In this document: positions 42,923 to 58,819 of the stretch, in pieces | How positions within the stretch are numbered: position 1 is the stretch's first letter | Layout: each line of letters begins with the position of its first letter | Sequence record: NC_048048.2 | DNA length: 64,000 nucleotides | Strand: one strand, 5' to 3' | Position numbers and translations under genes: made by a program | Notes under the pieces: model-generated | What the model was told of the DNA's origin: nothing | The model's database searches: none | The model's input: the letters and a program-made list of their open reading frames with translations, nothing else

Positions 42923-43125
42923 GACTTGACGTCGGCCCATTTCGCCGCCGACTTGACGCCGGATCATTTGCCCGGCCGACTTGACGCCAGCGCATTTCCC
43001 CCAGACTTGACGCGAACGCATTTCGAATTTGACGCGAGCGCGTTTCCTTCCCAAATTTGACGCGAGTCCATTTCAAACTTGACTTGACGTCATTTCATTT
43101 CCTTGACCTGACGCCGTTCCGTTCC
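42923..43125. repeat. array of 8 TTGACG-N6-CATTT units
   Basis: hexamer at 42926, 42953, 42981, 43007, 43029, 43057, 43084 and (CTGACG) 43108. Confidence 0.9.
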
Positions 43126-43133
43126 GCCGGGCC

Positions 43134-43360
43134 TTAAGGTTAACGGCGGATTAACCATACGGCGAGTAAGGTTAATTTTCAAGGTTAACGGGTAGGATGA
43201 ACGAACGTGGTTAACGGGCCTTAAGGTTAAATCTTAAGGTTAACAGGCGTTAAGGTTAACGCTTAGGGTGAAAAATTAAGGTTAACGCGCCCGGCCGGAC
43301 CGCCCAGGCCCTACCGGCGCCGTTAAGGTTAACGCCAGGGGTCGAATCGTTAAGGTTAAC
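43134..43360. repeat. dense TTAAGGTTAA / CtrA-type cluster
   Basis: about ten AGGTTAA/TTAAGGTTAA copies, including TTAA-N7-TTAACCAT. Confidence 0.85.
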
Positions 43361-43364
43361 ACCC

Positions 43365-43481
43365 AAAAACAGCGAAAATCAGCAAAAATCGTCCAAAAAC
43401 AGTGAAAATCAGCGAAAAATAGCGCTTTTCAGCCTGAAAATCGCAAAAAATCCGTGTTTTGGCCCATTTTTGGGTCATTTT
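43365..43481. other. helically phased A/T tracts (intrinsic bend)
   Basis: A4-6 at 43365, 43375, 43384, 43395, 43405, 43415, 43437, 43445; T tracts at 43426, 43457, 43467, 43478. Confidence 0.8.
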
Positions 43482-43550
43482 CGCGCTCTGACCCGCTTCT
43501 GGGCCAGCCCGAACGGGCGCCGGCCGGGTCGTGATCCCCCGGCCGGTGGG

Positions 43551-43613
43551 TCAGTGGAGAATCCAGAGCAACAGCGCCAGAGCCGCCAGTGACCAGCCGT
43601 TCAGCAATTTCAG
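43551..43613 (-). CDS. 20-aa hydrophobic peptide (KLL...LLWxLH family), CTG start
   Basis: (L/M)KLLNGWSLAALALLLWILH*; GAGAGG SD; similar to 53876 and 57615. Confidence 0.5.
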   Translation of the reverse strand: MKLLNGWSLAALALLLWILH

Positions 43614-43756
43614 GTGTGCGCCTCTCTCGTCTGCCGTGGCCGCTCGCCACGCTTCCTTCATCGCATACAAGAAAACTGTTGCCAAGCCCCAAAGATCGCT
43701 TGACAGCATAAAAGCCCAATGCGACAAGGGGACATCCAAACGGGAGACACCCCCCA

Positions 43757-44329
43757 ATGACCACCGAAACCCTCGACCTCCTCTATCCGGTCCTGATGCT
43801 GGAGCAGAAGATTCCCCACCGCGAAGGCATGTTGCGGCTGGCCATCGTCCTGCGCGACTTCGGCCCCAAGGCGCCCCATCGCTACGTCACCCACCTGCGG
43901 GCTGAAAACCCCGTGCCGGGCTCTGACCACGCCTTCACCTACAGCTATGAGCATGGCACCTATTCGGCCGACCTGCGCCGCGCCCTGGCCGTCTATTTCG
44001 AGCGCGTCACCGAGCGGGTCATGACCGCCATGGTCGTGCTCCACGACCTGCCCGAGGTCGCGCCGCCGGCGCCGACCGTCACCGTGCCGCTCGAACTGGC
44101 CCAGACCGCCTATGGCCTGATCGATGACAACGAACTGGACCTCTCCAAGGCCTGCGGCAACGTCACCTTGGTCGAGGCCGCCATTACCGGTCTGGCCGCC
44201 GTCCTGGGACCGCGCCGCTACTTCCGCGATGTCGAGGAAGGCAACGCCAAGCTTCTGGAGGCCTTCGAAGCCCAGCAAGCCGCGCGTGACGCGGCCCTAG
44301 AAGCCGAATCCGAAGAGGAAGAGGCCTAA
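43757..44329 (+). CDS. cassette gene, hypothetical
   Basis: GGGAGACACCCC leader. Confidence 0.8.
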   Translation: MTTETLDLLYPVLMLEQKIPHREGMLRLAIVLRDFGPKAPHRYVTHLRAENPVPGSDHAFTYSYEHGTYSADLRRALAVYFERVTERVMTAMVVLHDLPEVAPPAPTVTVPLELAQTAYGLIDDNELDLSKACGNVTLVEAAITGLAAVLGPRRYFRDVEEGNAKLLEAFEAQQAARDAALEAESEEEEA

Positions 44330-44499
44330 AAAGCCCGCCCAGGCCTCCCCGGCCTGGGCGTGAGCCCTCCAGGGGCCGTTAAGGTTAACGCCAGGGGCCG
44401 GGACGTTAAGGTTAAGGCCGAAAATAGTGCGAGAAACCTGTTGACACGCATTGCGGCCCTATGCGAGAACAAGGCTCCACTTCATGAGGAGCGCCAAGC

Positions 44500-45126
44500 A
44501 TGGCCCTGCCCGATCACTTCCTGGTTTCCGTCGACGGCTCGCTCTATGACACGCGGGTGCAAGGCTGGAACCAAGCCGCGCCGCTGCGGATCAATTACCG
44601 GATCGTCAATCGCGACATCCACGGCATGAGCGAGGTCAAGGCCGCCTTGCGCTGCGGCGCCTTTACCGACATCGGCGGCTATCCGCTGTATTTCGTCACG
44701 CAGGACGGCCGCGCCCTGTCCTTCGACAGCGCCCGCAAGATGCTCTATCAGATCGCCGACGATTTCCAGCATGGCGCCTCGACCGGCTGGCGGATCACCG
44801 GCGCCCTCATCAACTACGAGGATCACGACCTCGTCTGCGATCACAGCGGCGAGAAGATTCCGGCCGCCTATGATCCGGTGCAATGGGCCGCAGGCTGCAA
44901 TGTCTCGGGCTTCATGCCCGACAGCGAGCCTTCCCACCATGCGACCTGGGAAGAGGCCAAGGAAGACTTGCGCGCCCAGGTCGAACTGGCGCGCGAGCCC
45001 TACGAGATCGGTTCGGACGAGGACGACGCCCTAGCCCGCGTCGCCCGCGCCCTGGAGGCCCTTAAGGAAGGCCAAGAGCTTAACATGGGCGCCATCGGCT
45101 ATCGCTGGTGGGTCGAACGCCTGTAA
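44500..45126 (+). CDS. cassette gene, hypothetical
   Basis: GAGGAG SD; YPLYFVTQDG...CDHSGEKIPAAY. Confidence 0.8.
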   Translation: MALPDHFLVSVDGSLYDTRVQGWNQAAPLRINYRIVNRDIHGMSEVKAALRCGAFTDIGGYPLYFVTQDGRALSFDSARKMLYQIADDFQHGASTGWRITGALINYEDHDLVCDHSGEKIPAAYDPVQWAAGCNVSGFMPDSEPSHHATWEEAKEDLRAQVELAREPYEIGSDEDDALARVARALEALKEGQELNMGAIGYRWWVERL

Positions 45127-45147
45127 ACCAAGGAAAGGACCCCTTCC

Positions 45148-45294
45148 ATGTTCATTCTCATCGTCGGCAATCCCAGCGACGGCTTCACTTATTACGGCCC
45201 CTTCGACGAGCATGACGACGCCGTCACCTATGCCGAGGCGACCGGCACCGAGGGCAACCCCTGGTGGGTCGCGCCCCTGGAAGCGGCGGACTAG
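45148..45294 (+). CDS. 48-aa hypothetical protein
   Basis: AAGGA SD; MFILIVGNPSDGFTYYGPF. Confidence 0.7.
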   Translation: MFILIVGNPSDGFTYYGPFDEHDDAVTYAEATGTEGNPWWVAPLEAAD

Positions 45295-45300
45295 CCCGTC

Positions 45301-45435
45301 ATGACCGCTCTCGAAAAGCGCGGCTACAAGGCCGCCCAGGCGGGCGTCAAGTGGTGGAACAACCCCCACCCCAGCGGCTCCCCGGCCGCCTATCAGTGGG
45401 ACAAGGGCCACACCCGCCACCGCCTCGGACGCTAG
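45301..45435 (+). CDS. 44-aa Rmf/CrpP-like protein
   Basis: KRGYKAAQAG...NPHPSGSPAAYQWDKG. Confidence 0.6.
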   Translation: MTALEKRGYKAAQAGVKWWNNPHPSGSPAAYQWDKGHTRHRLGR

Positions 45436-45614
45436 CCGAGCCCAGGCCTTCGCGCCTGGGCTTTGCCCGCCCCCTGGGCGTTAAGGTTAAGGCCGAAAAT
45501 AGTTCAAGAAACCTGTTGACACGCATCAGGCTCCCATGCGAGAACAGGATCAGACGAAACGACAAGACCACAAAGGAGGCCGCCATGAAGTAGCGACAAT
45601 CTGGAGCACAACTC

Positions 45615-46001
45615 ATGGAATTCTTCGTCCGCACCACGCTGGTCAGCATCGCCCGCCACTGGGAGGACGGCGCCGACGTGATCGCCACCTGCTATTGCGT
45701 CTGTGTCGAGTACCCGGACGGCGCCCGCTATGTCCACGACTATCAGCCGGTCGACCGCTATGTCAGCGCCGACGACGAAGGCGAGCCCATCTATCCCTGG
45801 CGGGACGGCGAGGCCATCAAGGCCAAGCTGGACGCCTTGCGCGATGAGATCGCCGCCCACGTCGCCGCTGGCGGGAGCCTCGATCCTGGCCACTGGTTCG
45901 AGGTCGATCCGCGCTACGGCTCCCCGGCCTATATGGGCCTGGACGCCTTCGGGTTCTTCCGGGCGCGCGAAAAGCAAGAGGCCGCCGAGCGCGGCGACTG
46001 A
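45615..46001 (+). CDS. cassette gene, hypothetical
   Basis: GGAG SD; ...DPRYGSPAY. Confidence 0.8.
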   Translation: MEFFVRTTLVSIARHWEDGADVIATCYCVCVEYPDGARYVHDYQPVDRYVSADDEGEPIYPWRDGEAIKAKLDALRDEIAAHVAAGGSLDPGHWFEVDPRYGSPAYMGLDAFGFFRAREKQEAAERGD

Positions 46002-46008
46002 CACCCAA

Positions 46009-46036
46009 AAGGCCCGCCCATCCGGCGGGCCTTTTT
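46009..46036 (+). terminator. intrinsic terminator
   Basis: AAGGCCCGCC-loop-GGCGGGCCTTTTT. Confidence 0.8.
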
Positions 46037-46055
46037 CCTTGACCACCGCCTGGGG

Positions 46056-46082
46056 TTAACCTTAAGGCCGCGTTAAGGTTAA
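46056..46082. promoter_or_regulatory. extended CtrA-type box (example; exact N7 copies also near 47122, 47797, 49537, 51660, 54325, 56380, 57734, 63014)
   Basis: TTAACC-TTAA-N7-TTAA-GGTTAA. Confidence 0.8.
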
Positions 46083-46183
46083 GCCCGCCCAGGCCCGTAA
46101 AAAGATGCAAGAAACCTGTTGACACGCATGGAAGGCCTATGCGAGAACAGGGCTCAACACCAACGCCAGCCGGGAGACACCCC

Positions 46184-46774
46184 ATGGCCCTCGTCACCGA
46201 ATCCTTTGTCGTCGATCTGGCCTGCGGGCGCGCCCTGACCAACGGCGAGCGCCGCATGGTCGCCGCCGTGATCGACTCGCTTCTCGACCCGCATTTCAAG
46301 TCGACCGCCTGGGTCAAGGGCGGCGACCATCGCGAGGCCGTCCACTACTGCGACCGCGTGACGCCCTACAGCCTGCACGGCGAGAACGCCAACGCCGCGC
46401 GCGTGCGCACCGAGGCCCTGACCACCCGCGACCATGACGCCCCCGTCCTGCTGTCGCTGTCGGTCGGCGACACCATCGGCGAAATCGCCCGCTTCTACAC
46501 CATCGCCGCCGCTGTCGAATATCTCGACGGCAACCCCGATATCGATCCGACCTCGCTGCACATGGGCGCCTACACCATTGACGCCCCGTTCGGCGTGGCC
46601 AATGACATCGAGGCTGACAAGCTCCTCTATGACCTGGGCTATCGCCTGCACGCCATGGCCGGCGGGTCCTGGACCTACAGCGATCCGCAGGGCCGCCTGT
46701 GGGACGGCGGCGGCAAGCGCGAAGCCGTGGTCATGATCGCTCTGAAGCAAGCCGCCGACGCTGAAGAGGCCTAA
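46184..46774 (+). CDS. cassette gene, hypothetical
   Basis: GGGAGACACCCC leader. Confidence 0.8.
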   Translation: MALVTESFVVDLACGRALTNGERRMVAAVIDSLLDPHFKSTAWVKGGDHREAVHYCDRVTPYSLHGENANAARVRTEALTTRDHDAPVLLSLSVGDTIGEIARFYTIAAAVEYLDGNPDIDPTSLHMGAYTIDAPFGVANDIEADKLLYDLGYRLHAMAGGSWTYSDPQGRLWDGGGKREAVVMIALKQAADAEEA

Positions 46775-46779
46775 GGCCC

Positions 46780-47103
46780 GTGAAGCGCCGTCACGCCCTC
46801 TTCCTGTCGGTGATCGCTTCGGCGCCCGACGTGGTGATCCTGCAAGCTCCGGCGCACTTCCTGCGCTGGAGCGACCACCGCAAGGCCATCCTGGCGTTCA
46901 TGCGCCAGACCTACGGCGTCAAGGCCGCCGACGTTCACGCCGTCGAAGGCGTCGCCGGCTATGCCGAACCCGACCCGACCGACGACCCCGCCGTCCTGGC
47001 GCGCTTTCAAGCCGCCTTCGCCGGGTCTGACAACTTCCCCAAGGTCGCCCTGGCGGCCTGGGACGGGCAGGCCTATCGGCTGGTCCGCCGGCCTCTGGCG
47101 TGA
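46780..47103 (+). CDS. hypothetical protein
   Basis: GTG start after upstream stop. Confidence 0.65.
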   Translation: MKRRHALFLSVIASAPDVVILQAPAHFLRWSDHRKAILAFMRQTYGVKAADVHAVEGVAGYAEPDPTDDPAVLARFQAAFAGSDNFPKVALAAWDGQAYRLVRRPLA

Positions 47104-47227
47104 GGCCGCCACCGCCCAGGCTTAACCTTAACGTGGCGTTAAGGTTAAGGCCGAAAATAGTTCAAGAAAGCTGTTGACAGCATAGGAGGCTTATGCGAGA
47201 AAGGCTCATCGAAACGGGAGACACCCC

Positions 47228-47743
47228 ATGGACGACACCTATCCGCCCCTGACCCCCGGCCAGCAAGCCGCCCTGGTCGCCTTCGCCGACCAGCATGGCG
47301 GCCTGGGCGAGGCCTGGAAAGAGGCCCTGAGCGACGCCTGGAGGACGTGCAGCGAGCCCGATGCGCTCAAGGCCGACCTGCGGACCATCCGCAACACCTA
47401 TGGCCCCTCCTGGCTCTATGACGAATACGCCTGGGGCTGGCGCCCGACCCTTCCCGACTGGGAGCGCGCCGGCCGCTGGACCGACACCCCGCCGCAGCCG
47501 ACGCCGGGCAAGGCTCGCTGGAGCGCCGCCTTCGACCCGCCGGCCATCGGCGACCGGGTGCGCGTGACCACCAACGGCCTGGGCTGGGCGCGGGTCACCG
47601 GCTACTTCGTCGAAGCCGACTGGCTGGGCGTGATTGTCAAGCTGGAGGCCCCGGCCGACTGGTATGTCAAACAGAACGGCGGCAACGTCCCCGGCCACAG
47701 CTTCGGGACCGAGATCGCCCTGACCGACCCCGCGACCGACTGA
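47228..47743 (+). CDS. cassette gene, Trp-rich hypothetical with SH3-like C-terminus
   Basis: conserved leader; PAIGDRVRVTTNGLGWARV. Confidence 0.8.
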   Translation: MDDTYPPLTPGQQAALVAFADQHGGLGEAWKEALSDAWRTCSEPDALKADLRTIRNTYGPSWLYDEYAWGWRPTLPDWERAGRWTDTPPQPTPGKARWSAAFDPPAIGDRVRVTTNGLGWARVTGYFVEADWLGVIVKLEAPADWYVKQNGGNVPGHSFGTEIALTDPATD

Positions 47744-47923
47744 CCTGGACGGCCCTGGCTGGGAGACCAGCCGGGGCGAGGCCTAACCCGGCGCGGTTAA
47801 CCTTAACCGCCCATTAAGGTTAACCGCCGGCGCCCTGGGGCGGGCGAAAGAAAATGCAAGAAAACTGTTGACACGCATCTGAGGGCTATGCGAGAAAGGG
47901 CCATCGAACAACGGAGGCCCCTC

Positions 47924-48766
47924 ATGGCCAAGCTATTCAGCGACCTTCAGGACCTTGCCAACTCGACCTATGTCGTGCGCATCGTCGACAATGGCGGCCA
48001 GAGCGCCGACCGCTACACGATCGTCACCGCCGATGGCGACTATTACGCCTACAGCGCCAATCCCGCCCATCCCCAAGGCGTGGGCCTGAGCGGCGAGGGC
48101 ATCGACCCGCAAGTGCTGGTCGACTGGGTGGAGCGCGGCGAAGCCGTCGACCTGACCATCGGCGAGCTACCCGAGGCCGCCGCCCGCTGTCTGCTGGCGT
48201 CGATCAACGCCAGCGTCGAGGACTTCCTGTCGGCTGTCGAGGACCCGACCAGCAACGCCGTGGCCCCGACCCGCGAAAAGGCGGAGATCAATGACGGCGT
48301 GATGGATTGCTTCGGCAAGGGCATCTATCGCGTGGGCGAGGGTTTCGCCGTGCGCATGGATGGCCTGGACGCGGGCGATGATCGCGGCCCCTTCATGAGC
48401 GCTGTCGAGGCGGTCAAGGCCACCCTCCCCGATGAATACGCCTGGGCTGGCGAGGAATACCTGTCGCCGCGCGACATGACCAAGATCACGCCCGAAGCCA
48501 AGCCGCTCGTTCTGGTCCACGCCCTGGAGGCCATTCGCGACTATGAATATCAGCGCGACAACCCCGGCTCGTTCTTCGACGGGCTGAACGAGGACGACAC
48601 TGACGCGGGCCTGGGCATCGTGCGCCGCACGCGCTACCTGTCCAAGGTCACCGATGATGCGACCATCGTCGGGCTGATCGGCGAGGCGCCGGCCTTCGCC
48701 CTGGCCCATGAATGTCTCGACCAACTGTGGACCCTGGCGCAAGAGCGGTGGGAGGCGGGCCAGTGA
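47924..48766 (+). CDS. cassette gene, hypothetical
   Basis: GGAGG SD; RIVDNGGQSADRYTIV. Confidence 0.8.
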   Translation: MAKLFSDLQDLANSTYVVRIVDNGGQSADRYTIVTADGDYYAYSANPAHPQGVGLSGEGIDPQVLVDWVERGEAVDLTIGELPEAAARCLLASINASVEDFLSAVEDPTSNAVAPTREKAEINDGVMDCFGKGIYRVGEGFAVRMDGLDAGDDRGPFMSAVEAVKATLPDEYAWAGEEYLSPRDMTKITPEAKPLVLVHALEAIRDYEYQRDNPGSFFDGLNEDDTDAGLGIVRRTRYLSKVTDDATIVGLIGEAPAFALAHECLDQLWTLAQERWEAGQ

Positions 48767-48966
48767 GCGCCCGCGAACGCCGCGCCCTCTCCGAACTGCT
48801 GGCCCTGTTCCACGCGGTCAACAGCGGCCACGTCAAGGGCCGCAACCCCTACGCCTTCCCGGCCGTCAAGCTCGCCAACGAGGTATTGACGGGCGACCCG
48901 CTGGACGGGGTTTCCACGTCGCCGAAGCCCTGGACCGGCATCGCGAGGCGGACGGCAAGGCCTTGA
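48763..48966 (+). CDS. hypothetical protein
   Basis: GGAGG SD, GTGA overlap. Confidence 0.65.
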   Translation: MSARERRALSELLALFHAVNSGHVKGRNPYAFPAVKLANEVLTGDPLDGVSTSPKPWTGIARRTARP

Positions 48967-49070
48967 TTTTCGAGGTCGGCGGTTGCCCGGACGGCTGCTT
49001 GCTGTCCTACAGCGGCGCGGTTCCGCGCTGCGTCAACTGCGACACCGAATATCCCGAAGAAAACGGTTGA
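48963..49070 (+). CDS. 35-aa Cys-rich peptide
   Basis: TTGA overlap; GCPDGC...RCVNC. Confidence 0.45.
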   Translation: MIFEVGGCPDGCLLSYSGAVPRCVNCDTEYPEENG

Positions 49071-49121
49071 CAGCATAAGGGAGCTATGCGAGAAAGGGTC
49101 ATCAACGGAGACACCCCGCCC

Positions 49122-49262
49122 ATGTGGACCGAAAAGACCTTCAAGACCCGCGCCGCCAAGGAGGCCTGGATCGCCCGCAATGAAGACCGCTATCAGATCG
49201 TCGAGATCGTGGTCTGCAACGCCTACGGCGTGACCTACAAGCCCCTCCGACGCGTCTACTAG
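49122..49262 (+). CDS. 46-aa cassette gene
   Basis: conserved leader; MWTEKTFKTRAAKEAW. Confidence 0.75.
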   Translation: MWTEKTFKTRAAKEAWIARNEDRYQIVEIVVCNAYGVTYKPLRRVY

Positions 49263-49272
49263 GAGACCTCGC

Positions 49273-49464
49273 ATGATCCCCGACTCGGTCCGTAACCCGC
49301 AAGATCATTGGACCCCCATCGCCACCCGCGCCAAGGCTGACGCCCTGGCCTATCGCTACAACCAAGATGACGCCGGCCCCGGCCTCTACGAGGTCCACGA
49401 AAAGGGCGAAAGCTTCGCCATCGCCTACTATGACGAAGACGGCGCCTTCTGCGGCTACGTCTAA
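49273..49464 (+). CDS. 63-aa hypothetical protein
   Basis: AGGAG SD. Confidence 0.75.
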   Translation: MIPDSVRNPQDHWTPIATRAKADALAYRYNQDDAGPGLYEVHEKGESFAIAYYDEDGAFCGYV

Positions 49465-49481
49465 CCCGCTCCTGTCAACTT

Positions 49482-49518
49482 GAAGGCCGGCGCCGCTCTC
49501 CTGGCGCCGGCCTTTTTC
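49482..49518 (+). terminator. intrinsic terminator
   Basis: AAGGCCGGCGCC-loop-GGCGCCGGCCTTTTT. Confidence 0.85.
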
Positions 49519-49673
49519 TTGCCCGCCGCCTGGGTCTTAACCTTAAGGCGAGATTAAGGTTAACGCCGCCTTAAGGTTAACCGGTGCCCCGCATCCCGCC
49601 CGGATGCAAAAAACCTGTTGACACGCATTTCGACCCTATGCGAGAAAGGCGACGAACACGGGAGACACCCCTT

Positions 49674-50672
49674 ATGACCACGACCATTCCCGGCGCCGAG
49701 CATACGATGATCGGACAAGCCGCCTATCGCTCGACCAAGCGCCCCGACCAAGTGCGCGAGATGGCCTATGGCGCGTTCCCGGCCGCGACGTCGGACTCGC
49801 CCTTCGCCGTCAAGCCGGCCTGTGGCAAGGTCCCGAGCGCGCGCGTGCTGGAGGACTTCGACCCCGCCGACGTCTTCACGACCAGAGCCAATGATCGCGG
49901 CGGCTTCTATGCCTCCGCCAACTTCGGCGGCTCTGAGGTGTCGTGGATCAGCATCGCCGGCTATGGCGACACCGAGGAGGCCGCCCGCGCCGATCTCATG
50001 GCCCGGTTCATCGCCGACCGCGACGGCAAGGGCAAATTTGGCCCTCACCATCCCCTGGTCGGCTATGACTGGGGCTATAAGCTCGCCCCGTTCTGGGACA
50101 TGCTGGAGCGCGAGGCCGCCATTCGCCAGCCCTTCAAGCGCCAGCTTTACCTGGGCAAGCTGAAGTCCGGCCGCCCTAATCCCAAGGGCTTTGACGTGTT
50201 CGTCGATGTCGAATGGACCGGCGTGCGCCTGTCGCTGTCGGGCGTCATCGGCCCCAAGGCCAATGGCAACGCCTGGGACGGCGCAGGCCAGATCGTCGGC
50301 AGTCTCAAGCGCAAGGACTTTCTGGAGTTCGCCCCGTCCTGGCATTATGGATCGGCCCTTGACGGTCTGGTCCAGGCCTGGACCCGCTGGCACCTGAACG
50401 ACCTGCGCGCCGGCACGCTTCGGCAGGAAGACCACCTGCGCGGCTATGAGGCCAAGCGCAACATTGAGCAGGCCAAGGCCGCCGGCGCCCATTCTCTCGA
50501 CGCCACCCGCGCCGAACTGGCGCGCGTCCATATGGAGCCCGACACCTGGGAGCGCCACAACGGCCGGCCCTATAGCTACGGCTCCGCATGGCTTCGCGAG
50601 GAGGTCCCCACCTACGTTCTCGACTTCCTGCGCAATCTCCCCGCCCCCACCAAAATCAGCCCCTGGAGGTAA
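49674..50672 (+). CDS. cassette gene, hypothetical multidomain
   Basis: conserved leader; WTRWHLNDLRAG...YSYGSAWLREEVP. Confidence 0.8.
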   Translation: MTTTIPGAEHTMIGQAAYRSTKRPDQVREMAYGAFPAATSDSPFAVKPACGKVPSARVLEDFDPADVFTTRANDRGGFYASANFGGSEVSWISIAGYGDTEEAARADLMARFIADRDGKGKFGPHHPLVGYDWGYKLAPFWDMLEREAAIRQPFKRQLYLGKLKSGRPNPKGFDVFVDVEWTGVRLSLSGVIGPKANGNAWDGAGQIVGSLKRKDFLEFAPSWHYGSALDGLVQAWTRWHLNDLRAGTLRQEDHLRGYEAKRNIEQAKAAGAHSLDATRAELARVHMEPDTWERHNGRPYSYGSAWLREEVPTYVLDFLRNLPAPTKISPWR

Positions 50673-50679
50673 CCCGCCC

Positions 50680-51114
50680 ATGGCCATCAACACCGCCGGC
50701 CTCGTCGGCAAGCTCAAGGAAGCCCTCGCCGCCGCCCCCAACCTGACCCTATGGGCCAAGGAACGCGGCCTCTTCCATCAGAACGTTTCGGCCGCCGCGC
50801 GCGGCGACACCGTGCCGCAAGAAAGCATCGCCAAGGCCCTGGGCTTCCGACGCGTCCACGTCCAGGCCTATCTGGCGCCGGGCGAAGCCCTGCCGCTCCT
50901 GCCGCCCGGCTGGGAGGAGGTGCTTCCCGGTTCGGCGACCCCGGTCGACTGGAAGCCCCGCGACAAGGCCGCCGCCCCCGCCCCGCGCCGGGTCGGTTCG
51001 CCCGACCAGATGGCCAAGGCCCGCGACGCGCGCCGGCCGCGTTCCGCGCCGGTCCAGCCCCCGGCCCAAACCGCCGGCAAGCCTCGCCGCAAGAAAGTGC
51101 AAGAAACCGGTTGA
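50680..51114 (+). CDS. XRE/Cro-type HTH protein
   Basis: NLTLWAKERGLFHQNVSAAARGDTVPQESIAKALGF. Confidence 0.7.
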   Translation: MAINTAGLVGKLKEALAAAPNLTLWAKERGLFHQNVSAAARGDTVPQESIAKALGFRRVHVQAYLAPGEALPLLPPGWEEVLPGSATPVDWKPRDKAAAPAPRRVGSPDQMAKARDARRPRSAPVQPPAQTAGKPRRKKVQETG

Positions 51115-51164
51115 CAGCATAAGGCGGCTATGCGAGAAAGGCTCATCACTTCTGGAGCAAGCCC

Positions 51165-51374
51165 ATGGCCGCCTTCATCTGCACCGCCGATCTCAACGCC
51201 CTGGTCGAGGACATCGCCTATGACGTGGAGATGGAAGACCGCGCCGCCGAGGAACTCGACGGCCTGGACTTTGGCGACCGCTGTTACTACGGCGACCGCG
51301 CTTACCATGGCCAGCTTGAGCTTGCCCGGATCATCGAGACGGCCGTCGCCGCTCATCCCATCCTGTACGCCTAG
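51165..51374 (+). CDS. acidic 69-aa cassette gene
   Basis: GGAG SD downstream of promoter. Confidence 0.75.
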   Translation: MAAFICTADLNALVEDIAYDVEMEDRAAEELDGLDFGDRCYYGDRAYHGQLELARIIETAVAAHPILYA

Positions 51375-51390
51375 CAGAGGAGGCGCCGCT

Positions 51391-51603
51391 TTGCCACGCT
51401 ACCGCACCGACTACAGCGAAGACGACGGAAAAACCGTCATCATCGAGGAAGGCCTGACGAGGACGCAGGCCATGCAAAAGGCCGCGATCCTGTCGCGCAA
51501 GCACGGGACCGCCTACGCCGTCGCCTCCGACGACAAGGGCCGCGACACCGGCCAAAGGGTCTATGCTGACGGCCGGTTCAGCTACCAAGACGACAAGTTC
51601 TAA
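51391..51603 (+). CDS. 70-aa hypothetical protein
   Basis: AGGAGG SD before TTG. Confidence 0.7.
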   Translation: MPRYRTDYSEDDGKTVIIEEGLTRTQAMQKAAILSRKHGTAYAVASDDKGRDTGQRVYADGRFSYQDDKF

Positions 51604-51606
51604 GGC

Positions 51607-51634
51607 AAGAGGCCCGGAGCGATCCGGGCCTTTT
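51607..51634 (+). terminator. intrinsic terminator
   Basis: AGGCCCGG-loop-CCGGGCCTTTT. Confidence 0.8.
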
Positions 51635-51779
51635 GTCTGTCCCCCGCCCGGCGATAACCTTAACGCCGCGTTAAGGTTAACCCCCTGGGACGGGGGGCGC
51701 CGCCGCAAAAACTGCAAGAAAACTGTTGACACGCATTTCGACCCTATGCGAGAAAGGCGCATCAACCACGGAGGACAAC

Positions 51780-52511
51780 ATGTCCACGCACCCGCTGATC
51801 GCCGCCGCCCTGGCCAATCTTCGCGAAGGCCCGGCCATGGTCGCCGGCCCCGACCACGTCACCAAGGTCACGTCCTACGAACTGACCCGCGCGGTCATGT
51901 TCAAGGCCGCCGACCAGATCGAACGGGCTCTGAGCGATTTCCCCGCCCCGCCCGCCTGCCTGGGCGCCTTCCTGATGACCGAGTTCGACCGCCTGGGCGA
52001 CAACTGGGGCGCCCTGGGCGACGCCATCACCGAAGGCGAGGCCCTGGCCAATGCTGAAACCGTCCTGGCGTGGTACTTCAACGCCACCCGTGACGACGGC
52101 GACCCGGACGGCTACACGCTCAAACTCGCTGGCGCCCTGCCCAACGACGCCGAGGCCGCCCGCATCCGCCGCGACTACGCCGCCGCCCTGGAGGCGCAAG
52201 AGCAGGCCAAGGCCGCCGAGGCTCGCGCCTTCGCCGACCGTCACGCCGCCCTAGGTTCGGCCGAAGCCGTCGCCGACCTCCTGGGCTCGCTGTTCGACAC
52301 GCCGCGCACCGCCGCCGAGGCCCTGGGCTACAGCTTCCATTTCGTCCCGGTGATCGGCGGCGAGATCGAGGGCGAACGCGCCTGGATCGGCGAGGACAAG
52401 GCCGGCGAGCGCGTCCATGGCGACTACGCCAGCGCCGACCAAGCCGCCCGCGCCGCCCTCATCTACCACGTGCGCGCCAACCAAGCCGCCCAAATCGTCA
52501 AGGACGCCTGA
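51780..52511 (+). CDS. cassette gene, Ala-rich hypothetical
   Basis: GGAGG SD. Confidence 0.8.
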
Positions 52512-52513
52512 CC

Positions 52514-53140
52514 ATGACCGCCGCCGCATCCCTCTTCGAACAAGCCCAGATCGAGGCCGCTCAAGCCGCCATCGACGCCAACACCGCGCGCGTTGGGCTG
52601 GAGACCGAGGACGCCACGCCCGGAACCGACCTTTTCCACCTGCTGGGCTCGCTGCTGACCTGGGCCGACGCCTGGGCCGTGGACTTCGACGACATCCTGT
52701 CTCAGGTCCGCGAACCGGTGAACCTCTCCAAGACCGTGACCCGCTTTGATCCGGCCACCTATGGCCAAGACCAGCGGCTTGCGGCCATCCGCGCCAATCT
52801 CGACCAGCGCAACACCCCTTCCGTTCCGGTCCTGACCCGCGACGAGGCCGAAACCGAGGCCATGCGCGATCTCGCCGCCGTGGTCGGCAAGGTGATCAAG
52901 GTCCACGATATCACCGGCTATTTCGGCGAGACGGGCCAAGAGGACTTGCGCCCCCACGACGGCGCGCCGGCCTTTTCGGTGATCGTCCTGCCGTCCGACC
53001 GGGACGACGTGATCTACTGGAATGACGAGCATCTGGACGTTCGGTGGAACGTCACCCCCGCGCCGGGCGAAACCCGCCTCTACGAACTGCGCTCGCTCTG
53101 GGTGTTCGGGCGCGGCTATGTCATCGAAGGCGAGGGCTGA
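52514..53140 (+). CDS. hypothetical two-domain protein
   Basis: coupled ORF; DLFHLLGSLLTWAD. Confidence 0.75.
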   Translation: MTAAASLFEQAQIEAAQAAIDANTARVGLETEDATPGTDLFHLLGSLLTWADAWAVDFDDILSQVREPVNLSKTVTRFDPATYGQDQRLAAIRANLDQRNTPSVPVLTRDEAETEAMRDLAAVVGKVIKVHDITGYFGETGQEDLRPHDGAPAFSVIVLPSDRDDVIYWNDEHLDVRWNVTPAPGETRLYELRSLWVFGRGYVIEGEG

Positions 53141-53142
53141 TC

Positions 53143-53451
53143 ATGGCCATGCCCCTGGGCTTGCGGACCACCGCCACCAGCTACGCCATTGACGTGGACG
53201 ATGACCAGTTTCTGGCCATGATCCAGGCCGAAGGCTACAAGGGCGGTGATTTCGAGCCGTCCCTGTTCGACAAGCTGCAAAAGACCCCCGCCCGCGACAT
53301 CGAATATAACGGCCACTTCGGCGCGTCGGTCTATTTCACCCTCACCGAGGAAGACGACACCCCCGCCCTACGCGCCGAGCTTGGCCGGATGATCGCCGAA
53401 CACCTAACCCTCTGCGTCGCCCACATGGCGACCTACGACAAGGACGCCTGA
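53143..53451 (+). CDS. hypothetical protein
   Basis: coupled ORF. Confidence 0.75.
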   Translation: MAMPLGLRTTATSYAIDVDDDQFLAMIQAEGYKGGDFEPSLFDKLQKTPARDIEYNGHFGASVYFTLTEEDDTPALRAELGRMIAEHLTLCVAHMATYDKDA

Positions 53452-53453
53452 CC

Positions 53454-53759
53454 ATGCTGAATATCGAGGACCAGACGATTCGCCTTCGCGAGGAAGGCAA
53501 GAACAAGACCACCACCGTCATTGGCGGGGTGCTGCTGTTCTTCTCCTATTCGACCCTGGTCGGCTTTCGCTGTCCGCGCCTGGGGATGGTGATCAACCCG
53601 GCCGCCAAGAGCTACGGCGTCACCACCGCCCGCCACGTCGGCGAATTTGGCCTAGGCGCGCCGGGCGTGGGTAAAACCGCCACCGAAGAAGACTTTCAGC
53701 GCCTCGCCATGGGCGCGGTCATGGGTTCGTCCGGGCCTGACTACCTACTGTTGAATTAA
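53454..53759 (+). CDS. hypothetical protein
   Basis: AAGGA SD; LFFSYSTLVG...YGVTTARHV. Confidence 0.75.
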   Translation: MLNIEDQTIRLREEGKNKTTTVIGGVLLFFSYSTLVGFRCPRLGMVINPAAKSYGVTTARHVGEFGLGAPGVGKTATEEDFQRLAMGAVMGSSGPDYLLLN

Positions 53760-53875
53760 GCCCCGAGACGAGCACTAGGGCTGTCACGAATCCCCTCATC
53801 TATGACAGCTTAAGAGCCCGTTTAGTCTTCCCTGTACTCTGTTGCGCCAGTATCGGCGCGGAAAGTGATGCGCCT

Positions 53876-53938
53876 ATGAAGCTCCTCGAAGGTGGCGGAC
53901 TGCTGGCCCTGTGCTTCCTTTTCTGGCTCCTCCACTGA
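53876..53938 (+). CDS. 20-aa hydrophobic peptide
   Basis: MKLLEGGGLLALCFLFWLLH*; near-identical protein at 57615. Confidence 0.65.
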   Translation: MKLLEGGGLLALCFLFWLLH

Positions 53939-54002
53939 CAAGGCTGTTGACAGCATCAAGGCCCTATGCGAGAAAGGCTCATCGCCACCGGAGACACCCG
54001 CG

Positions 54003-54269
54003 ATGACCGATTACGACGATTGGGGCCAAGAGGCCTATATGGACCACCTCCATGATCAGGCCGTTGACGAGGCTTTCGAGCGCCACGCCGACGACGCCTA
54101 TGAGGACGACCTGGGCGCCGAAGACCCGGACCTCGAATTCCCCGATGAGGCGGACGACGAGGAAGACCTTCGCCGGGCCGAAGGGCTCATGCCCTGGGCG
54201 ACCCCCGAGGGCGTCGAGCCTGGGCAGTTCCCCCGCCGGGCCTATGACGACGACGAAATCCCGTTCTGA
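54003..54269 (+). CDS. acidic protein ending in an SSB-like C-terminal tip
   Basis: very D/E-rich 88 aa ending RRAYDDDEIPF*. Confidence 0.8.
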   Translation: MTDYDDWGQEAYMDHLHDQAVDEAFERHADDAYEDDLGAEDPDLEFPDEADDEEDLRRAEGLMPWATPEGVEPGQFPRRAYDDDEIPF

Positions 54270-54282
54270 CCTCCTCCCTTCG

Positions 54283-54310
54283 AAAGGCCCCGCGCGGGCC
54301 TTTCTTTTTG
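54283..54310 (+). terminator. intrinsic terminator
   Basis: GAAAGGCCC-loop-GGGCCTTTCTTTTT. Confidence 0.8.
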
Positions 54311-54479
54311 CCCCGCGCCTGGGGTTAACCTTAACGCCGCCTTAAGGTTAACCCGGCCGGATCGTTTTTCGTCTTTTGTGTCGGGCCGTCTTTCGTTTTC
54401 CGTGTCGAGGTGCAAGAAAGCTGTTGACAGCATAAAAGCCCTATGCGAGAAAGGCTCATCGCAACCAAGGAGCCCGACC

Positions 54480-54671
54480 ATGGGACTCAAGATCGAAATC
54501 GACACCGGCAACGAGGCCTTCCAAGGCGTGGCCGGCGAGCATTGCGCCACCCTCCTGCATGAGGTCGCCCGCAAGCTCGATCAAGGCGCCCGCGCCGGCA
54601 ATATCTACGACGGCAACGGCAACAAGGTCGGGACCTACGAACTCGACCACACCGACGCCCCGGAGTCGTGA
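54480..54671 (+). CDS. 63-aa cassette gene
   Basis: AAGGAG SD; IYDGNGNKVG. Confidence 0.75.
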   Translation: MGLKIEIDTGNEAFQGVAGEHCATLLHEVARKLDQGARAGNIYDGNGNKVGTYELDHTDAPES

Positions 54672-54674
54672 GCC

Positions 54675-55001
54675 GTGGCCAGCTACGTCATCCAGATCAG
54701 CGTGAACGTGGAGGTCGATGACCTCCCCGTTCTGTTGGCCGCCGCCATGGCCAAGGCCACGGGCGACGACGGCCTGACCGAAGATCAAGCCCGCGATATC
54801 CTGACCAACTCCGACCCTCTGGGCCGGCCGGATGTCAAGGCCTGTCTGACCATGCTGTTTGATCCGGGCGTCAGCCCGGACGGCACGTCGATCAATGACA
54901 GCATCGTCACCCGCGAGGACTACGACCAAGACGAGGCCATGGACGCCTATGAGGCCGCCCACGGCGAGGACGAGGAAGGGGAAGGCGATGACGAGGACTA
55001 G
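54675..55001 (+). CDS. acidic hypothetical protein
   Basis: GGAG SD; D/E-rich tail. Confidence 0.75.
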   Translation: MASYVIQISVNVEVDDLPVLLAAAMAKATGDDGLTEDQARDILTNSDPLGRPDVKACLTMLFDPGVSPDGTSINDSIVTREDYDQDEAMDAYEAAHGEDEEGEGDDED

Positions 55002-55338
55002 GAGCAAGAAGCGCGTCCCGCAACGCCTGCTTCTGGCCAATCGCGCGCCCCTGGTCGCCGGGCCTGACCCCGCCACCCGCCGCCACTGGTGGGAGCTTCT
55101 GGAGAGCGTCGGCGAGCCGCGCGACCTTGAGGCCCTGCTGGTCGTGGCGATTGACCAAGACGCGGCCGAAACCGTCGCCGGGGTCTTTCCGCTCGCCGGC
55201 GCCGACTATGAAGCCCAGAGCCGCAAGGCCGACGCCCTGGCCGCCGCCACCACCCGCCCCCGCAGCCCTGGCCAGCGCGACGCGCTCAACGCCTATGTGC
55301 TGCACGTCAATGACCCGAACGCCGAGCATCATCCATGA
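54988..55338 (+). CDS. hypothetical protein
   Basis: overlapping coupled ORF. Confidence 0.65.
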   Translation: MTRTRSKKRVPQRLLLANRAPLVAGPDPATRRHWWELLESVGEPRDLEALLVVAIDQDAAETVAGVFPLAGADYEAQSRKADALAAATTRPRSPGQRDALNAYVLHVNDPNAEHHP

Positions 55339-55586
55339 GCTATTCCGGCCCGATCACCATCGCCCAAGGCCAGCGCTTCCAACTAGACAGCTACGGCAAC
55401 GGCGCGGCCTATGCCTTCTATGACCGCACCGCCGGCGCCAGCGTCTGGCTGGACGGCGACGACGCCACCCAGTTTCGCGCCGACTTCGACAACGCCGAAG
55501 ACCGCCGCCCCCATGACGGGCCTGACCAGATCATGGCCCATCTGTGGGACGAACACGACTACGGCGCCGCCGCCACGCCGCTCTAA
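55335..55586 (+). CDS. hypothetical protein
   Basis: ATGA overlap. Confidence 0.75.
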   Translation: MSYSGPITIAQGQRFQLDSYGNGAAYAFYDRTAGASVWLDGDDATQFRADFDNAEDRRPHDGPDQIMAHLWDEHDYGAAATPL

Positions 55587-55590
55587 GTCA

Positions 55591-55620
55591 AGGCCCGCCC
55601 ATCCCCCTGGGCGGGCCTTG
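55591..55620 (+). terminator. intrinsic terminator
   Basis: AAGGCCCGCCCA-loop-TGGGCGGGCCTT. Confidence 0.7.
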
Positions 55621-55729
55621 TCCTGGGCGATCGGCGTTAACCTTAACGCGCAAGAAAACTGTTGACACGCATTGCAGCCCTATGCGAGAAAGAGCGCCTA
55701 GGCCGCTTTGGCCCCTGGAGACTTGCGTC

Positions 55730-56311
55730 ATGGAACACCGCGACTTCGTTCCCCACATCATCACCGCCCGCACCGTGGATGGAACCGTCTACTACGAGTC
55801 CAGCCACTGCACCGCCTTCCATCTGGGCTATGCCCGCGCCATGGACAAGGCCGACGCCGAGCGCCGGGCCGCCGCCTGGAAGCGCGCGGAAAAGGACGGC
55901 GCCCCGCAAGCCACCATCGACGAGGGAACCTATGGGATCACCGTCGTGGCCACCACCTGGGAGGCCCTGGACAAGGCCCGCGCCCATCGCGCCGAGCTTG
56001 AGCGCCTGGAGGCCAATTTCCTCGCCGAGGAGGCCCATGACGACCAGTTCGACGACTATGAAGAACCGGTCATGAGCCCCGAGGATATCGCTGCCGAGGA
56101 AGAGGCCGCCCGCGACTATCTGGCCACCATCCAGCCCCATAAGGCCGGCGACGTGGTGCGGATCACCGACGAGGGCCATCCCCATTTCGGGGCGCTGGCC
56201 ACCGTCGCCGAGGCCGAATGGAGCGGCTATCTCGTCCTTGACCTGGGCGCGGGCCTGACCTGGGGCTGGGCGACGGGCGTGCAATCGACGGCCGATTTCC
56301 CCCAGCCTTGA
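55730..56311 (+). CDS. cassette gene with KOW/SH3-like C-terminus
   Basis: GGAGA SD; KAGDVVRITDEGHPHFGALATV. Confidence 0.75.
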   Translation: MEHRDFVPHIITARTVDGTVYYESSHCTAFHLGYARAMDKADAERRAAAWKRAEKDGAPQATIDEGTYGITVVATTWEALDKARAHRAELERLEANFLAEEAHDDQFDDYEEPVMSPEDIAAEEEAARDYLATIQPHKAGDVVRITDEGHPHFGALATVAEAEWSGYLVLDLGAGLTWGWATGVQSTADFPQP

Positions 56312-56331
56312 AAGCTGGCCTCGCGCCAGCA

Positions 56332-56362
56332 AAAAGGCCCGTCCCCTGGCGGGGCGGGCCTT
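56332..56362. terminator. terminator between convergent genes
   Basis: AAAAAGGCCCG...CGGGCCTT hairpin. Confidence 0.65.
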
Positions 56363-56419
56363 GTCCGGTCCGATCGGGATTAACCTTAACGAGAGATTAA
56401 GGTTAACGCGCCCTTAAGG

Positions 56420-56665
56420 TTAACTGGTGGCGTTCTTGCGCGTCGTGGCCTGGGGATTGGCCTTGAGCCATGCGTCGGCTTCCGTGCGGGTCGAGAACGG
56501 CGCCCCGCCAATGCCCTGCGTGCCGTCATCCCATTGAATGGTCCAACCCACGTCCTTGATTTCCCAATCCTCCGCCACGCCATGGGGAATCGGCGTATGA
56601 AGCGCGATGCGGGTAAAGGGCGCGCGCTTGAGTTGACGGATGCGCGCCGGAATGACTTGCGGCAT
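56420..56665 (-). CDS. 81-aa hypothetical protein on the minus strand
   Basis: AAGGA SD; own minus-strand promoter TTGACA(56744)-N16-TACATT. Confidence 0.75.
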   Translation of the reverse strand: MPQVIPARIRQLKRAPFTRIALHTPIPHGVAEDWEIKDVGWTIQWDDGTQGIGGAPFSTRTEADAWLKANPQATTRKNATS

Positions 56666-56843
56666 GTGTGGAATTTCCTTGACAAAGGCCTTGCCCCATG
56701 GGCGGCCCGAAAGGCGAATGTAGCAAGCGGCGCTTTCGTGTCAAGAAATGCGACATGGGCTAGAATCCTGTTGACACGCATTGCGGTCCTATGCGAGAAA
56801 GATCGGGCAAAGGCGCATCCCGCGCCGCTGGGAGACACCCCGC

Positions 56844-57614
56844 ATGGACCTGACCACCTTTACGGCCAAGGCTGATTTCGTGCTCTGCAATGAGCCGGTG
56901 ACCATCACCGTCAAGCCCGCCGGCCGCCCGCTCTACCTGTCGTTTTCCATCGACCAGATCGGCATGATCGGCGGCGCCGAGGAGCTTTACGCCAAGGCCG
57001 AACAACACGGCGTCGAGGACCTGATAACGGTTCTCAACATTTCCAACGTCCTGTCGCTGAAGTCCATCGAGACCTATGACGACGAAGACCGCGAGGCCGT
57101 CGAAAGCCTGCGCTACGCCCTGCTCATGCTCGACGGCGAGCGCTACGCTTCGGATGTCCAGTTCGAGGACGTGGACGAGGCCGAGTTTTCCAACCGCGAC
57201 GACACCATTGACAGCCGGCAAATCGTCGAGCGGGTCGAGGTGCTTCGGAGCGCCCTGGAAACCGCCGGCTTCGACACCGCCGACCTGTCCGCCCTGGAAG
57301 ACCTCGACGCCGACGAAGCCGTCAAGGACGCCGACCAGCGCGACGCCTTCAACGCCATCCGCGAGGAATTCCTGATCCTGGCGCGCATGGTCGAGGAGGG
57401 CGGCAACTACGGCGAGGATTGGCGGTTCGGCGCGACTCTGGTCCGCGAATCCTACTTCACCGAGTTCGCGCAAGAAGAGTGCGAAAGCCTGGGCTTCATC
57501 TCCAAGGACTTCCCGTCCTGGATCGCCATCGACTGGGAAAAGACCGCCGAAACGATGCTACACGACTACACCGAAATCGACTTCGACGGCGTGAGCTACT
57601 ACGTCCGCGCCTAG
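56844..57614 (+). CDS. acidic ArdA-like antirestriction/DNA-mimic protein
   Basis: D/E-rich; C-terminal YFTEFAQE...SWIAIDWEKTAETMLHDYTEIDFDGVSYY resembles the ArdA C-terminal IDYExxARDL pattern. Confidence 0.55.
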   Translation: MDLTTFTAKADFVLCNEPVTITVKPAGRPLYLSFSIDQIGMIGGAEELYAKAEQHGVEDLITVLNISNVLSLKSIETYDDEDREAVESLRYALLMLDGERYASDVQFEDVDEAEFSNRDDTIDSRQIVERVEVLRSALETAGFDTADLSALEDLDADEAVKDADQRDAFNAIREEFLILARMVEEGGNYGEDWRFGATLVRESYFTEFAQEECESLGFISKDFPSWIAIDWEKTAETMLHDYTEIDFDGVSYYVRA

Positions 57615-57677
57615 GTGAAGCTCCTCGAAGGCGGCGGCCTGCTCGCGCTCTGCTTCCTCCTCTGGTTGCTTCACTAA
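57615..57677 (+). CDS. 20-aa hydrophobic peptide
   Basis: MKLLEGGGLLALCFLLWLLH*; GTG directly after the upstream TAG. Confidence 0.65.
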   Translation: MKLLEGGGLLALCFLLWLLH

Positions 57678-57716
57678 ACCCGGCCGGCGTCCATGACCTG
57701 GGCGCCGGCCTTTTCT
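57678..57716 (+). terminator. intrinsic terminator
   Basis: GGCCGGCG-loop-CGCCGGCCTTTT. Confidence 0.75.
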
Positions 57717-57774
57717 TACCGCGCCGATCGGGGTTAACCTTAACGCCGTCTTAAGGTTAACGGCGGGCCTGGAG

Positions 57775-57877
57775 GCGAGGGCGTCAAGGCCGCGAGCTAG
57801 GATTACACGCGATGGCTTAGCCGGCGTCCAGCCGGCGGCGCCTTCGACCACCGCGAGGCGGCCTTGACCCTCGCAAT
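57775..57877 (-). ncRNA. candidate structured ~100-nt small RNA
   Basis: 17-bp closing stem with a 2-nt bulge, 9-bp inner stem with G-U pairs only on the minus strand, GCCGGC hairpin; minus-strand TTGACA-N16-CGAGAT promoter at 57903-57876. Confidence 0.6.
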
Positions 57878-57988
57878 CTCGCCGATCCGCGACCAAGTGT
57901 CAACCGTTTTCTTTTTCCAAGAAACCTGTTGACACGCATCGAACGCCTATGCGAGAAAGACTCAACGTCAACGCCTGGAACCCTATCC

Positions 57989-58645
57989 ATGCCCCGCACC
58001 GTCACCAAACAGGTCTACACCTTCAAGGAACTGAATCCCAAGGCCAAGCAAAAGGCCATCGAGTGGTATCGTGGCCTGAACGATCAAGACTCCGGTTGGT
58101 GGGATTTCGTCTATGACGAAGCCGACCGCATCGCCGAAGCCTTCGGGATCACCCTGCGCCGCAAGGAAGCCGGCAAGCCCAATAGCGGCCCGGACATCAT
58201 GTTCACCGGCTTCTGGAGTCAAGGCGACGGCGCCTGTTTCCAAGGCCGCTACGAGTCGCCCCAAACCCCGGCCGTCGAAGCCTTCGCCGCCCTGGGGATC
58301 GAAGACGCCACGCTCAAGGCTCTGGCCGCCCGCCTCGACGCCCTGAGCGCCAAGGTGCGCTTGATCAGCACGGTCAAGCACTCCGGTCACTACTATCACG
58401 AGTATTGCACCGACTTCGAAACCGAGCGCATGGTTCCCGACGACGCCGGCGACGACTTCGATATCTACGATTTCGACCACGAGGACGAAAAGGAACTGAT
58501 CGACATTCTTCGCAGCTTCATGAAGTGGATTTATCGCCAGCTTGAGGCCGTGGACGAAGATCGCAATTCCGATGAGACGATCAGCGAAACCCTGACCGAC
58601 TCCGATTACGAATTCGAGGCGGACGGCTCGCCGACCAACGACTAG
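57989..58645 (+). CDS. acidic cassette gene of a widespread mobile-element family
   Basis: VYTFKEL...AKQKAIEW...WWDFVY...FTGFWSQGDGACF...YEFEADG. Confidence 0.8.
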   Translation: MPRTVTKQVYTFKELNPKAKQKAIEWYRGLNDQDSGWWDFVYDEADRIAEAFGITLRRKEAGKPNSGPDIMFTGFWSQGDGACFQGRYESPQTPAVEAFAALGIEDATLKALAARLDALSAKVRLISTVKHSGHYYHEYCTDFETERMVPDDAGDDFDIYDFDHEDEKELIDILRSFMKWIYRQLEAVDEDRNSDETISETLTDSDYEFEADGSPTND

Positions 58646-58700
58646 GCCAAGCCCGCCGCGCCCGGCCTCAACGCCGGGCGCGTGTCGGGTTTTGGTTTTT
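58646..58700 (+). terminator. intrinsic terminator
   Basis: GCGCCCGGC-loop-GCCGGGCGC followed by T-rich tail. Confidence 0.6.
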
Positions 58701-58819
58701 CAAGGTCCTGTTAAGGTTAACGAAAAAAGCCCTCGGACGGCCTGAGAAAAACGCAAGAAAACTGTTGACACGCATCCAAGCCCTATGCGAGAAAGGCTCA
58801 TCGCAACGGGAGACACCCC

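Follow-up and report, generated by a model that had tools for sequence, protein, structure and literature searches.

The last 64 kb of the genome of Caulobacter phage CcrSC (MH588547.2; 317,489 bp), a giant (jumbo) lytic phage of the genus Bertelyvirus, contain three short open reading frames (ORFs), c1, c2 and c3, that encode related, strongly hydrophobic peptides of 20 residues; a fourth member of the family, c4, lies elsewhere in the genome. We refer to this right-hand stretch of 64,000 nucleotides as the window and number positions from its first letter. Weighing the evidence set out below, we consider it somewhat better than an even chance (a probability of about 0.55) that these ORFs are translated, Bertelyvirus-specific micropeptide genes whose products would be made early in infection and would serve as a minimal inner-membrane helix for host takeover. 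The original prediction had placed c1, c2 and c3 at the same positions and with exactly the same sequences, to which we add the GTG start of c2 and the CTG start of c3 (Table 1).

A regular-expression scan and then a family hidden Markov model (HMM), applied to all six frames of the whole CcrSC genome, returned c4 as the only further member; the HMM scored the four loci at E<=3.6e-9 and the next-best open frame at E=4.6. Each peptide begins with M-[KR]-L-[LI], continues with one to four polar or small residues and then 11 hydrophobic ones, among them W at position -4, and ends in H before the stop codon; M1, L3, W17, L19 and H20 are invariant in the aligned family. They are 17 to 20 residues long with a grand average of hydropathy (GRAVY) of 1.3 to 2.1, carry K or R at residue 2, and bear Trp and His at the C-terminus. 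In CcrSC the c2 peptide is that of c1 with the single change F16L. The C-terminal heptad is almost unchanged among paralogues that have otherwise diverged to a proportion of nonsynonymous differences (pN) of about 0.36. Loci c1 to c3 are annotated neither in CcrSC nor in any relative, and the family is annotated in none of the nine deposited Bertelyvirus genomes.

Table 1. Positions of the micropeptide ORFs and of the features next to them (window coordinates unless marked)
Feature	Position	Strand	Description
c1	53876..53938	+	ATG start; MKLLEGGGLLALCFLFWLLH-stop; between gp024 and the gp025 promoter
c2	57615..57677	+	GTG start adjoining the gp032 TAG stop; MKLLEGGGLLALCFLLWLLH-stop; last ORF of the gp032 cassette
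c3	43613-43551	-	CTG start; (M/L)KLLNGWSLAALALLLWILH-stop; sole minus-strand unit in its part of the repeat
c4	genome 182059-182112, outside the window	-	ATG start; MRLITFLICCFVLWLLH-stop
Early promoter of the gp021-gp024 cassette	51726..51760	+	consensus; likeliest source of c1 transcription, by read-through
Palindrome	53781..53808		CTGTCA-N16-TGACAG; between gp024 and c1
gp025 early promoter	53947..53985	+	begins 9 nt after the c1 stop
Early cassette promoter of gp032 and c2	56771..56805	+	consensus
gp032	56844..57614	+	acidic; upstream partner of c2
Intrinsic terminator	57682..57710	+	12-bp stem, then TTTTCTT; 4 nt after the c2 stop
c3 promoter	43655..43685	-	degenerate early-promoter copy TTGGCAAC-N10-TATGCGATGAAGG; back to back with the gp005 promoter
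c3 leader	43621..43650	-	invariant hairpin GTGGC-GAGCG-GCCAC (43636-43650) and Shine-Dalgarno sequence
c3 3' hairpin	43520..43546	-	4 nt after the stop; about -29 kcal/mol; no U-tract

Conservation and distribution of the encoded peptides

Within CcrSC, 10 of the 57 internal nucleotides differ between c1 and c2, eight of them at codon position 3, with a single F/L change, an arrangement that random placement of the differences yields with P=1.5e-5; the earlier claim that their many synonymous differences reflect selection on the protein is therefore upheld, far beyond chance. The corresponding pair in CcrBL9 also differs at 10 nucleotides, nine of which are third positions, and encodes one identical peptide, an outcome reached in 0 of 200,000 simulations. 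For c1 versus c2 the proportion of synonymous differences (pS) is 0.54 to 0.62 and pN is 0.02 to 0.05. Between CcrSC and RB23, c1 differs at 17 nucleotides with four conservative amino acid changes (pS 0.69, pN 0.155) and c3 at 16 nucleotides with four changes (pS 0.65, pN 0.145). Across the pairs, pS of 0.54 to 0.69, which is near saturation, thus stands against pN of 0.02 to 0.155, and randomly placed substitutions match this in 0 to 3.4e-4 of trials. Conservation of the frame in relatives, on which the original prediction had made its case depend, also holds: frame and stop are kept in 22 of 22 extracted copies (one per locus per genome), with TGA, TAA or TAG as the stop codon, and leucine codons alternate between CTN and TTR.

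Directly outside the ORFs, there are indels whose lengths are not divisible by three. Alignment of CcrSC with RB23 nearly fails upstream of c1, where the in-frame sequence is unrelated, and an 11-nt insertion follows the stop. The synonymous excess inside the ORFs and the indels outside them therefore exclude a purely nucleic-acid element, and a search of the whole repeat against Rfam gave no match. Two compensatory pairs are predicted inside the c3 ORF, as might be expected of an untranslated DNA or RNA element that carries an open frame by chance, but the clustering of substitutions at third positions (9 of 10 in the CcrBL9 pair), the CTN/TTR switches, the near-identical peptide, the intact frames and stops and the Rfam result leave such an element barely credible. 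The pattern of substitution indicates that what is conserved is the peptide sequence, not the DNA or the RNA.

The start of c3 could be placed by the same comparison. Just 5' of its CTG codon, one-nucleotide indels shift an invariant leader block, so that its frame is a different one in each of CcrSC, CcrBL9 and RB23, and the K-L-L of the peptide is preserved through three synonymous codon changes; the translation start is therefore the invariant CTG. We also considered c3 as the tail of a longer ORF and rejected this, as the upstream frame is different in all three lineages.

A tblastn search of phage records with the 20-mer gave no match, probably because of the low-complexity filter and the short query, after which DNA patterns and the family HMM were used to find relatives. 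The family is present in all nine sequenced Bertelyviruses at orthologous, syntenic positions, with all four loci in CcrSC and CcrBL9 and only c1 and c3 in RB23, BL47, C1, C2, J4, CcrC3 and CcrBL1. These genomes represent about three independent lineages, namely CcrSC, CcrBL9 and the near-identical RB23 group. In the eight other Bertelyviruses a 15-nt degenerate pattern for W-[LIF]-L-H-stop matched orthologous positions only, and a reversed control gave zero or one match per genome. The RB23 homologue of gp032 ends in a stop codon followed directly by the same terminator, with no c2 between them, and the promoter upstream of its gp254c homologue leads straight into the Shine-Dalgarno (SD) sequence, with no c4. 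Since these contexts are intact without the ORF, c2 and c4 are clean insertions or deletions of the mini-ORF alone.

Beyond the genus, neither pattern nor HMM found a member in phiCbK, CcrColossus or CcrRogue (best E=0.12, within a 191-residue ORF). Back-translated patterns were scanned through IMG/VR, one genome each of 185,579 prokaryotic species, JGI metagenomes and 401 genomes of one alphaproteobacterial order, and returned only CcrBL9 and chance-like strings, of which many contain internal stops and none lies in Caulobacter; an ATG start was required in the genome and metagenome scans, and in those with fixed spacing the exact 20-codon length as well, so that divergent members could escape them. 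Soil and wastewater metagenomes hold relatives of the region on short contigs, and one contig end reads L-L-H-stop, the RB23-like form. On these comparisons the peptides are a new family of a known kind, small hydrophobic phage and bacterial peptides, confined to one phage genus. Of the original proposal of a phage micropeptide family acting on the host membrane, the family is thus borne out, with orthologues in nine of nine Bertelyviruses, and the membrane location is plausible from composition.

Promoters, signals and neighbours of the four loci

The terminal repeats of CcrSC are identical and 23,946 bp each, the right one occupying window 40055-64000. All of c1, c2 and c3 lie within it, so that a genome has two copies of each. 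The repeat is built as an array of about 17 cassettes with host-type promoters, all in one orientation. A generic sigma-70 scan missed the phage's own promoters, and a custom consensus was built and used instead: one stereotyped host-type promoter, CTGTTGACA(C)GCAT-N9-CTATGCGAGAAAGG, occurs in 17 copies per repeat, all on the plus strand, spanning window 44441-61300 (for example at 53947, 54424, 56771 and 57929), with a single loose match in the remaining 270 kb outside the repeats. Locus c2 belongs to the cassette of the promoter at 56771, c3 has a degenerate promoter copy of its own, and c1 lies downstream of the promoter at 51726. The neighbouring early-region genes are, by appearance, probably anti-defence or takeover genes; one of them, gp004, encodes a membrane protein of 48 residues. 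From the early-promoter cassettes and the takeover-like neighbours we infer that the micropeptide genes are expressed early, by host RNA polymerase.

The four loci differ in their signals. At the end of the gp021-gp024 cassette, c1 is an ORF with an ATG start, and no terminator-like site was scored between gp024 and c1. The start of c2 is coupled to the stop codon of gp032, the C-terminal half of whose product resembles, by tblastn, proteins annotated as ArdA-like antirestriction in other phages (Pfam gave no match). The c3 locus is a free-standing minus-strand unit composed of promoter, 5' hairpin, SD, CTG ORF and 3' hairpin. Its SD is GAGAGAGG (43621-43628; AAGGAGG in RB23), 7-8 nt 5' of the CTG, and in RB23 the stem of the 3' hairpin is rebuilt with other bases, that is, it covaries, with the loop GGATCACGA kept. 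The SD, promoter and downstream hairpin previously assigned to c3 are real, and the promoter matches the early consensus. Locus c4 has a strong GGAGG SD and an ATG start, and lies in the leader of gp254c, whose product has a signal peptide, upstream of a tellurite-resistance-like cluster.

The spacing of these signals raises the question of a role in cis, in which a leader- or arrest-like nascent peptide, or the terminating ribosome, would control a downstream element: the terminator that follows c2, the 3' hairpin of c3 or, behind c4, the gp254c SD. The stop codons of c2 and c3 lie 4 nt before strong hairpins and that of c4 lies 6 nt before the SD of the next gene, and conservation peaks at the C-terminus and stop codon. 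However, the same peptide occurs in four unrelated contexts, in one of which (c1) only a promoter follows, and RB23 keeps the terminator geometry without c2 and the promoter-to-SD arrangement without c4. Because of these four unrelated contexts, two of them intact in RB23 without the ORF, the case for a leader or arrest role is weakened; moreover, conservation extends to the N-terminal M-[KR]-L-[LI] and to hydrophobicity as a whole, neither of which an arrest motif requires. We regard cis-acting regulatory mini-ORFs as improbable.

The original prediction had likened the peptides to type I toxins and had suggested looking for antisense RNAs. In a type I toxin-antitoxin module a toxic peptide is encoded by an mRNA that is held in check by an antisense RNA. 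The phage peptides agree with the general features of type I toxins (PMC8309996) in being small (<60 residues) and hydrophobic and in forming a multi-copy family. In a consensus fold, part of the SD region of c3 is paired with bases that lie 3' of the c3 hairpin, the pairs being invariant and hence uninformative, and a minus-strand promoter with a structured RNA of about 100 nt lies about 100 nt downstream of c2. Against this, the search for a -35-like element and a -10 to match it on the antisense strands of c1, c3 and c4 gave nothing. The minus-strand RNA near c2 is conserved to the same degree in RB23, where c2 is absent, and the duplexes it forms with the four mRNAs are energetically no better than those with control windows (fraction as good, 0.07-0.70). 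Nor did the peptides match Ibs, Ldr, Hok, TisB, Fst or other toxin models in NCBIfam, Pfam or PHROGs at E<=10, and it is not obvious what a lytic jumbo phage would gain from an addiction module. The analogy, drawn from size and hydrophobicity, is not supported, and we hold a type I module to be very unlikely.

The minus-strand RNA is of interest in itself. A minus-strand copy of the early promoter, GGTTGACAC-N16-GAGATTGCGAGGG, at window 57775-57905 would produce a GC-rich RNA of about 100 nt closed by a long terminal stem (-57 kcal/mol) and highly conserved in RB23. As an antitoxin it was rejected, since it is kept in RB23 without c2 and shows no specific pairing.

Several other features of these regions were recorded. 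The palindrome upstream of c1 is found at this locus only (once per copy of the terminal repeat); in RB23 the arms are unchanged and the loop differs, and every early -35 region also contains the half-site TGACAG. The palindrome may form a hairpin or serve as an operator or weak promoter. The gene that follows c1, gp025 (54003-54269), encodes an extremely acidic protein of 88 residues with a C-terminal DDDEIPF that resembles the tail of bacterial SSB, and may be a decoy for host proteins that bind SSB. In the region of genome positions 176000-182700, c4 heads a minus-strand block of gp254c, gp253c and gp252c, followed by a TerD/TerC-like tellurite-resistance cluster; gp255c, upstream of the block, is nucleoside 2-deoxyribosyltransferase-like (Pfam E=6e-35).

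The motif TTAAGGTTAAC occurs 59 times in the genome, 58 of them within the two repeats, with 29 sites per repeat (window 41371-63031). It precedes most early promoters, usually by about 55 nt, often forms inverted pairs and is dense at 43134-43350. A stretch of 1.3 kb without an annotated gene (42285-43550) contains five to eight direct repeats ACTTGACG-N5-7-CATTT (42924-43100) and then the TTAAGGTTAAC cluster, both kept in CcrBL9 and RB23, as well as a perfect CtrA-type box, TTAA-N7-TTAAC, at 43140/43154; the stretch is a candidate replication origin or regulatory hub. Phage T7 uses transcription-assisted entry of its DNA, and the co-oriented strong promoters at the leading end of the CcrSC genome resemble such an arrangement.

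Possible action of the peptides

In the mechanism that we favour, the peptides would be produced early by host RNA polymerase and would form a minimal helix in the inner membrane, with the N-terminal K/R in the cytoplasm and the W-x-L-H end at the periplasmic interface, and would act there as part of host takeover. From K/R2 to H20 they measure 18 residues (15 in c4), and in c1 to c3 residues 5-8 form a linker of polar residues or Gly that leaves a core of 11 residues. The invariant W17 and H20 suggest binding of a specific membrane protein rather than non-specific leakage, and the presence of several copies, started by ATG, GTG or CTG, would fix the dose. Other tiny membrane-protein genes form an array in this phage: window 33428-35303 is a run of back-to-back ORFs with 13 micro membrane-protein genes, whose hydrophobic products have 23-69 residues and in one case contain FFLWLL.

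Several points weigh against this proposal. The unbroken hydrophobic stretch of c1 to c3, about 11 residues after a Gly- or polar-rich linker, appears short for a full membrane span. Neither c1 nor c2 has a clear SD, and c3 would rely on a rare CTG start; in the host, CTG serves at 0.7% of starts and 75% of genes lack an SD (PMC4117421), so that weak signals at c1 and c2 do not disqualify them. The comparisons are few because there are only about three independent lineages. Among the sequencing runs searched, no RNA run contains CcrSC, and no homologue of known function was found, Pfam, NCBIfam and PHROGs being without a match at E<=10.

A helix of this kind might instead damage membranes generically, by pore formation, depolarisation or thinning, through bulk insertion and oligomerisation and with no specific partner; superinfection exclusion, host shut-off or lysis timing would be its uses. 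Such damage would fit the size and hydrophobicity, which are like those of Ibs- and TisB-type peptides, and the presence of several copies, and the weak starts of c2 (GTG, no SD) and c3 (CTG) would suit a product needed at a low level. However, c4 combines an ATG start with a strong SD, and the invariance of W17 and H20, together with the near-invariance of the C-terminal heptad, argues for sequence-specific recognition. Because that heptad is nearly invariant in paralogues otherwise diverged, we favour a specific protein target over bulk membrane damage, only modestly, and generic damage seems to us possible, if unlikely.

The early-made, protein-directed helix can be taken further, with less conviction. 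We speculate that the family is a self-contained, movable mini-gene of about 60 nt, inserted between stop and terminator (c2), between promoter and SD (c4) or at a cassette end (c1), whose product would block, in a sequence-specific way, a single machine of the host inner membrane, with the dose tuned by the start codons and the doubled repeat. This machine might be the divisome, as with SidA, or, if superinfection exclusion is the purpose, the route of entry through pilus or flagellum. This version is doubtful; if true, few phage effectors with a defined target would be smaller.

Annotation pipelines do not see genes of this length, yet these are among the most strongly constrained sequences of the early region. 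Size, paralogy, graded start codons and a place in the DNA that is likely to be the first to enter the cell set the family apart, and it adds to the evidence that the genus invests heavily in tiny membrane peptides. The 20-mer offers a compact reagent with which to probe the action of a jumbo phage on the Caulobacter envelope in the first minutes of infection, and paralogues with an identical peptide despite saturated synonymous divergence provide a clean benchmark for micropeptide gene finders.

Comparison with known systems

The Ibs-type toxins of enterobacteria, such as IbsC, are 18-19 residues long. The phage peptides resemble those of the Ibs/Sib systems in their length of about 19-20 residues, their M-[KR]-L-hydrophobic start, their almost wholly hydrophobic composition, the existence of several paralogues and their absence from default annotation. 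They differ in showing no sequence homology and in that no antisense partner was found for them; the phage genes also lie in a lytic early region, within ordinary cassettes, and the invariant W-x-L-H is not a feature of Ibs.

SidA of Caulobacter is a 29-residue division inhibitor that binds FtsW. MgrB is a small single-span regulator of a membrane protein (PMC2789325). Like the helix we propose, both are tiny inner-membrane helices that function through specific residues and by binding a larger membrane protein, and SidA shows that the divisome of the host can be controlled in this way. Unlike the phage peptides, both are host-encoded and stress-induced, and the likeness drawn here is one of general features.

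The 13-gene array of CcrSC shares with the micropeptides the genus to which it is restricted, tiny hydrophobic products and the lack of known relatives. It is, in contrast, tandem and translationally coupled and lies outside the terminal repeat. An hhalign comparison of the two gave a probability of 46% over nine columns, and the family HMM does not pick up the array.

PhiNM1 Gp11 is an early small membrane protein of a phage that hits functions of the host envelope (PMC11237401). It would share with the CcrSC peptides an early gene and a small membrane protein in the service of host takeover, which for the CcrSC peptides is our proposal. The present peptides, at 17-20 residues, are far shorter than typical annotated phage membrane proteins, and they are set apart by their multiple copies and their place in a terminal repeat.

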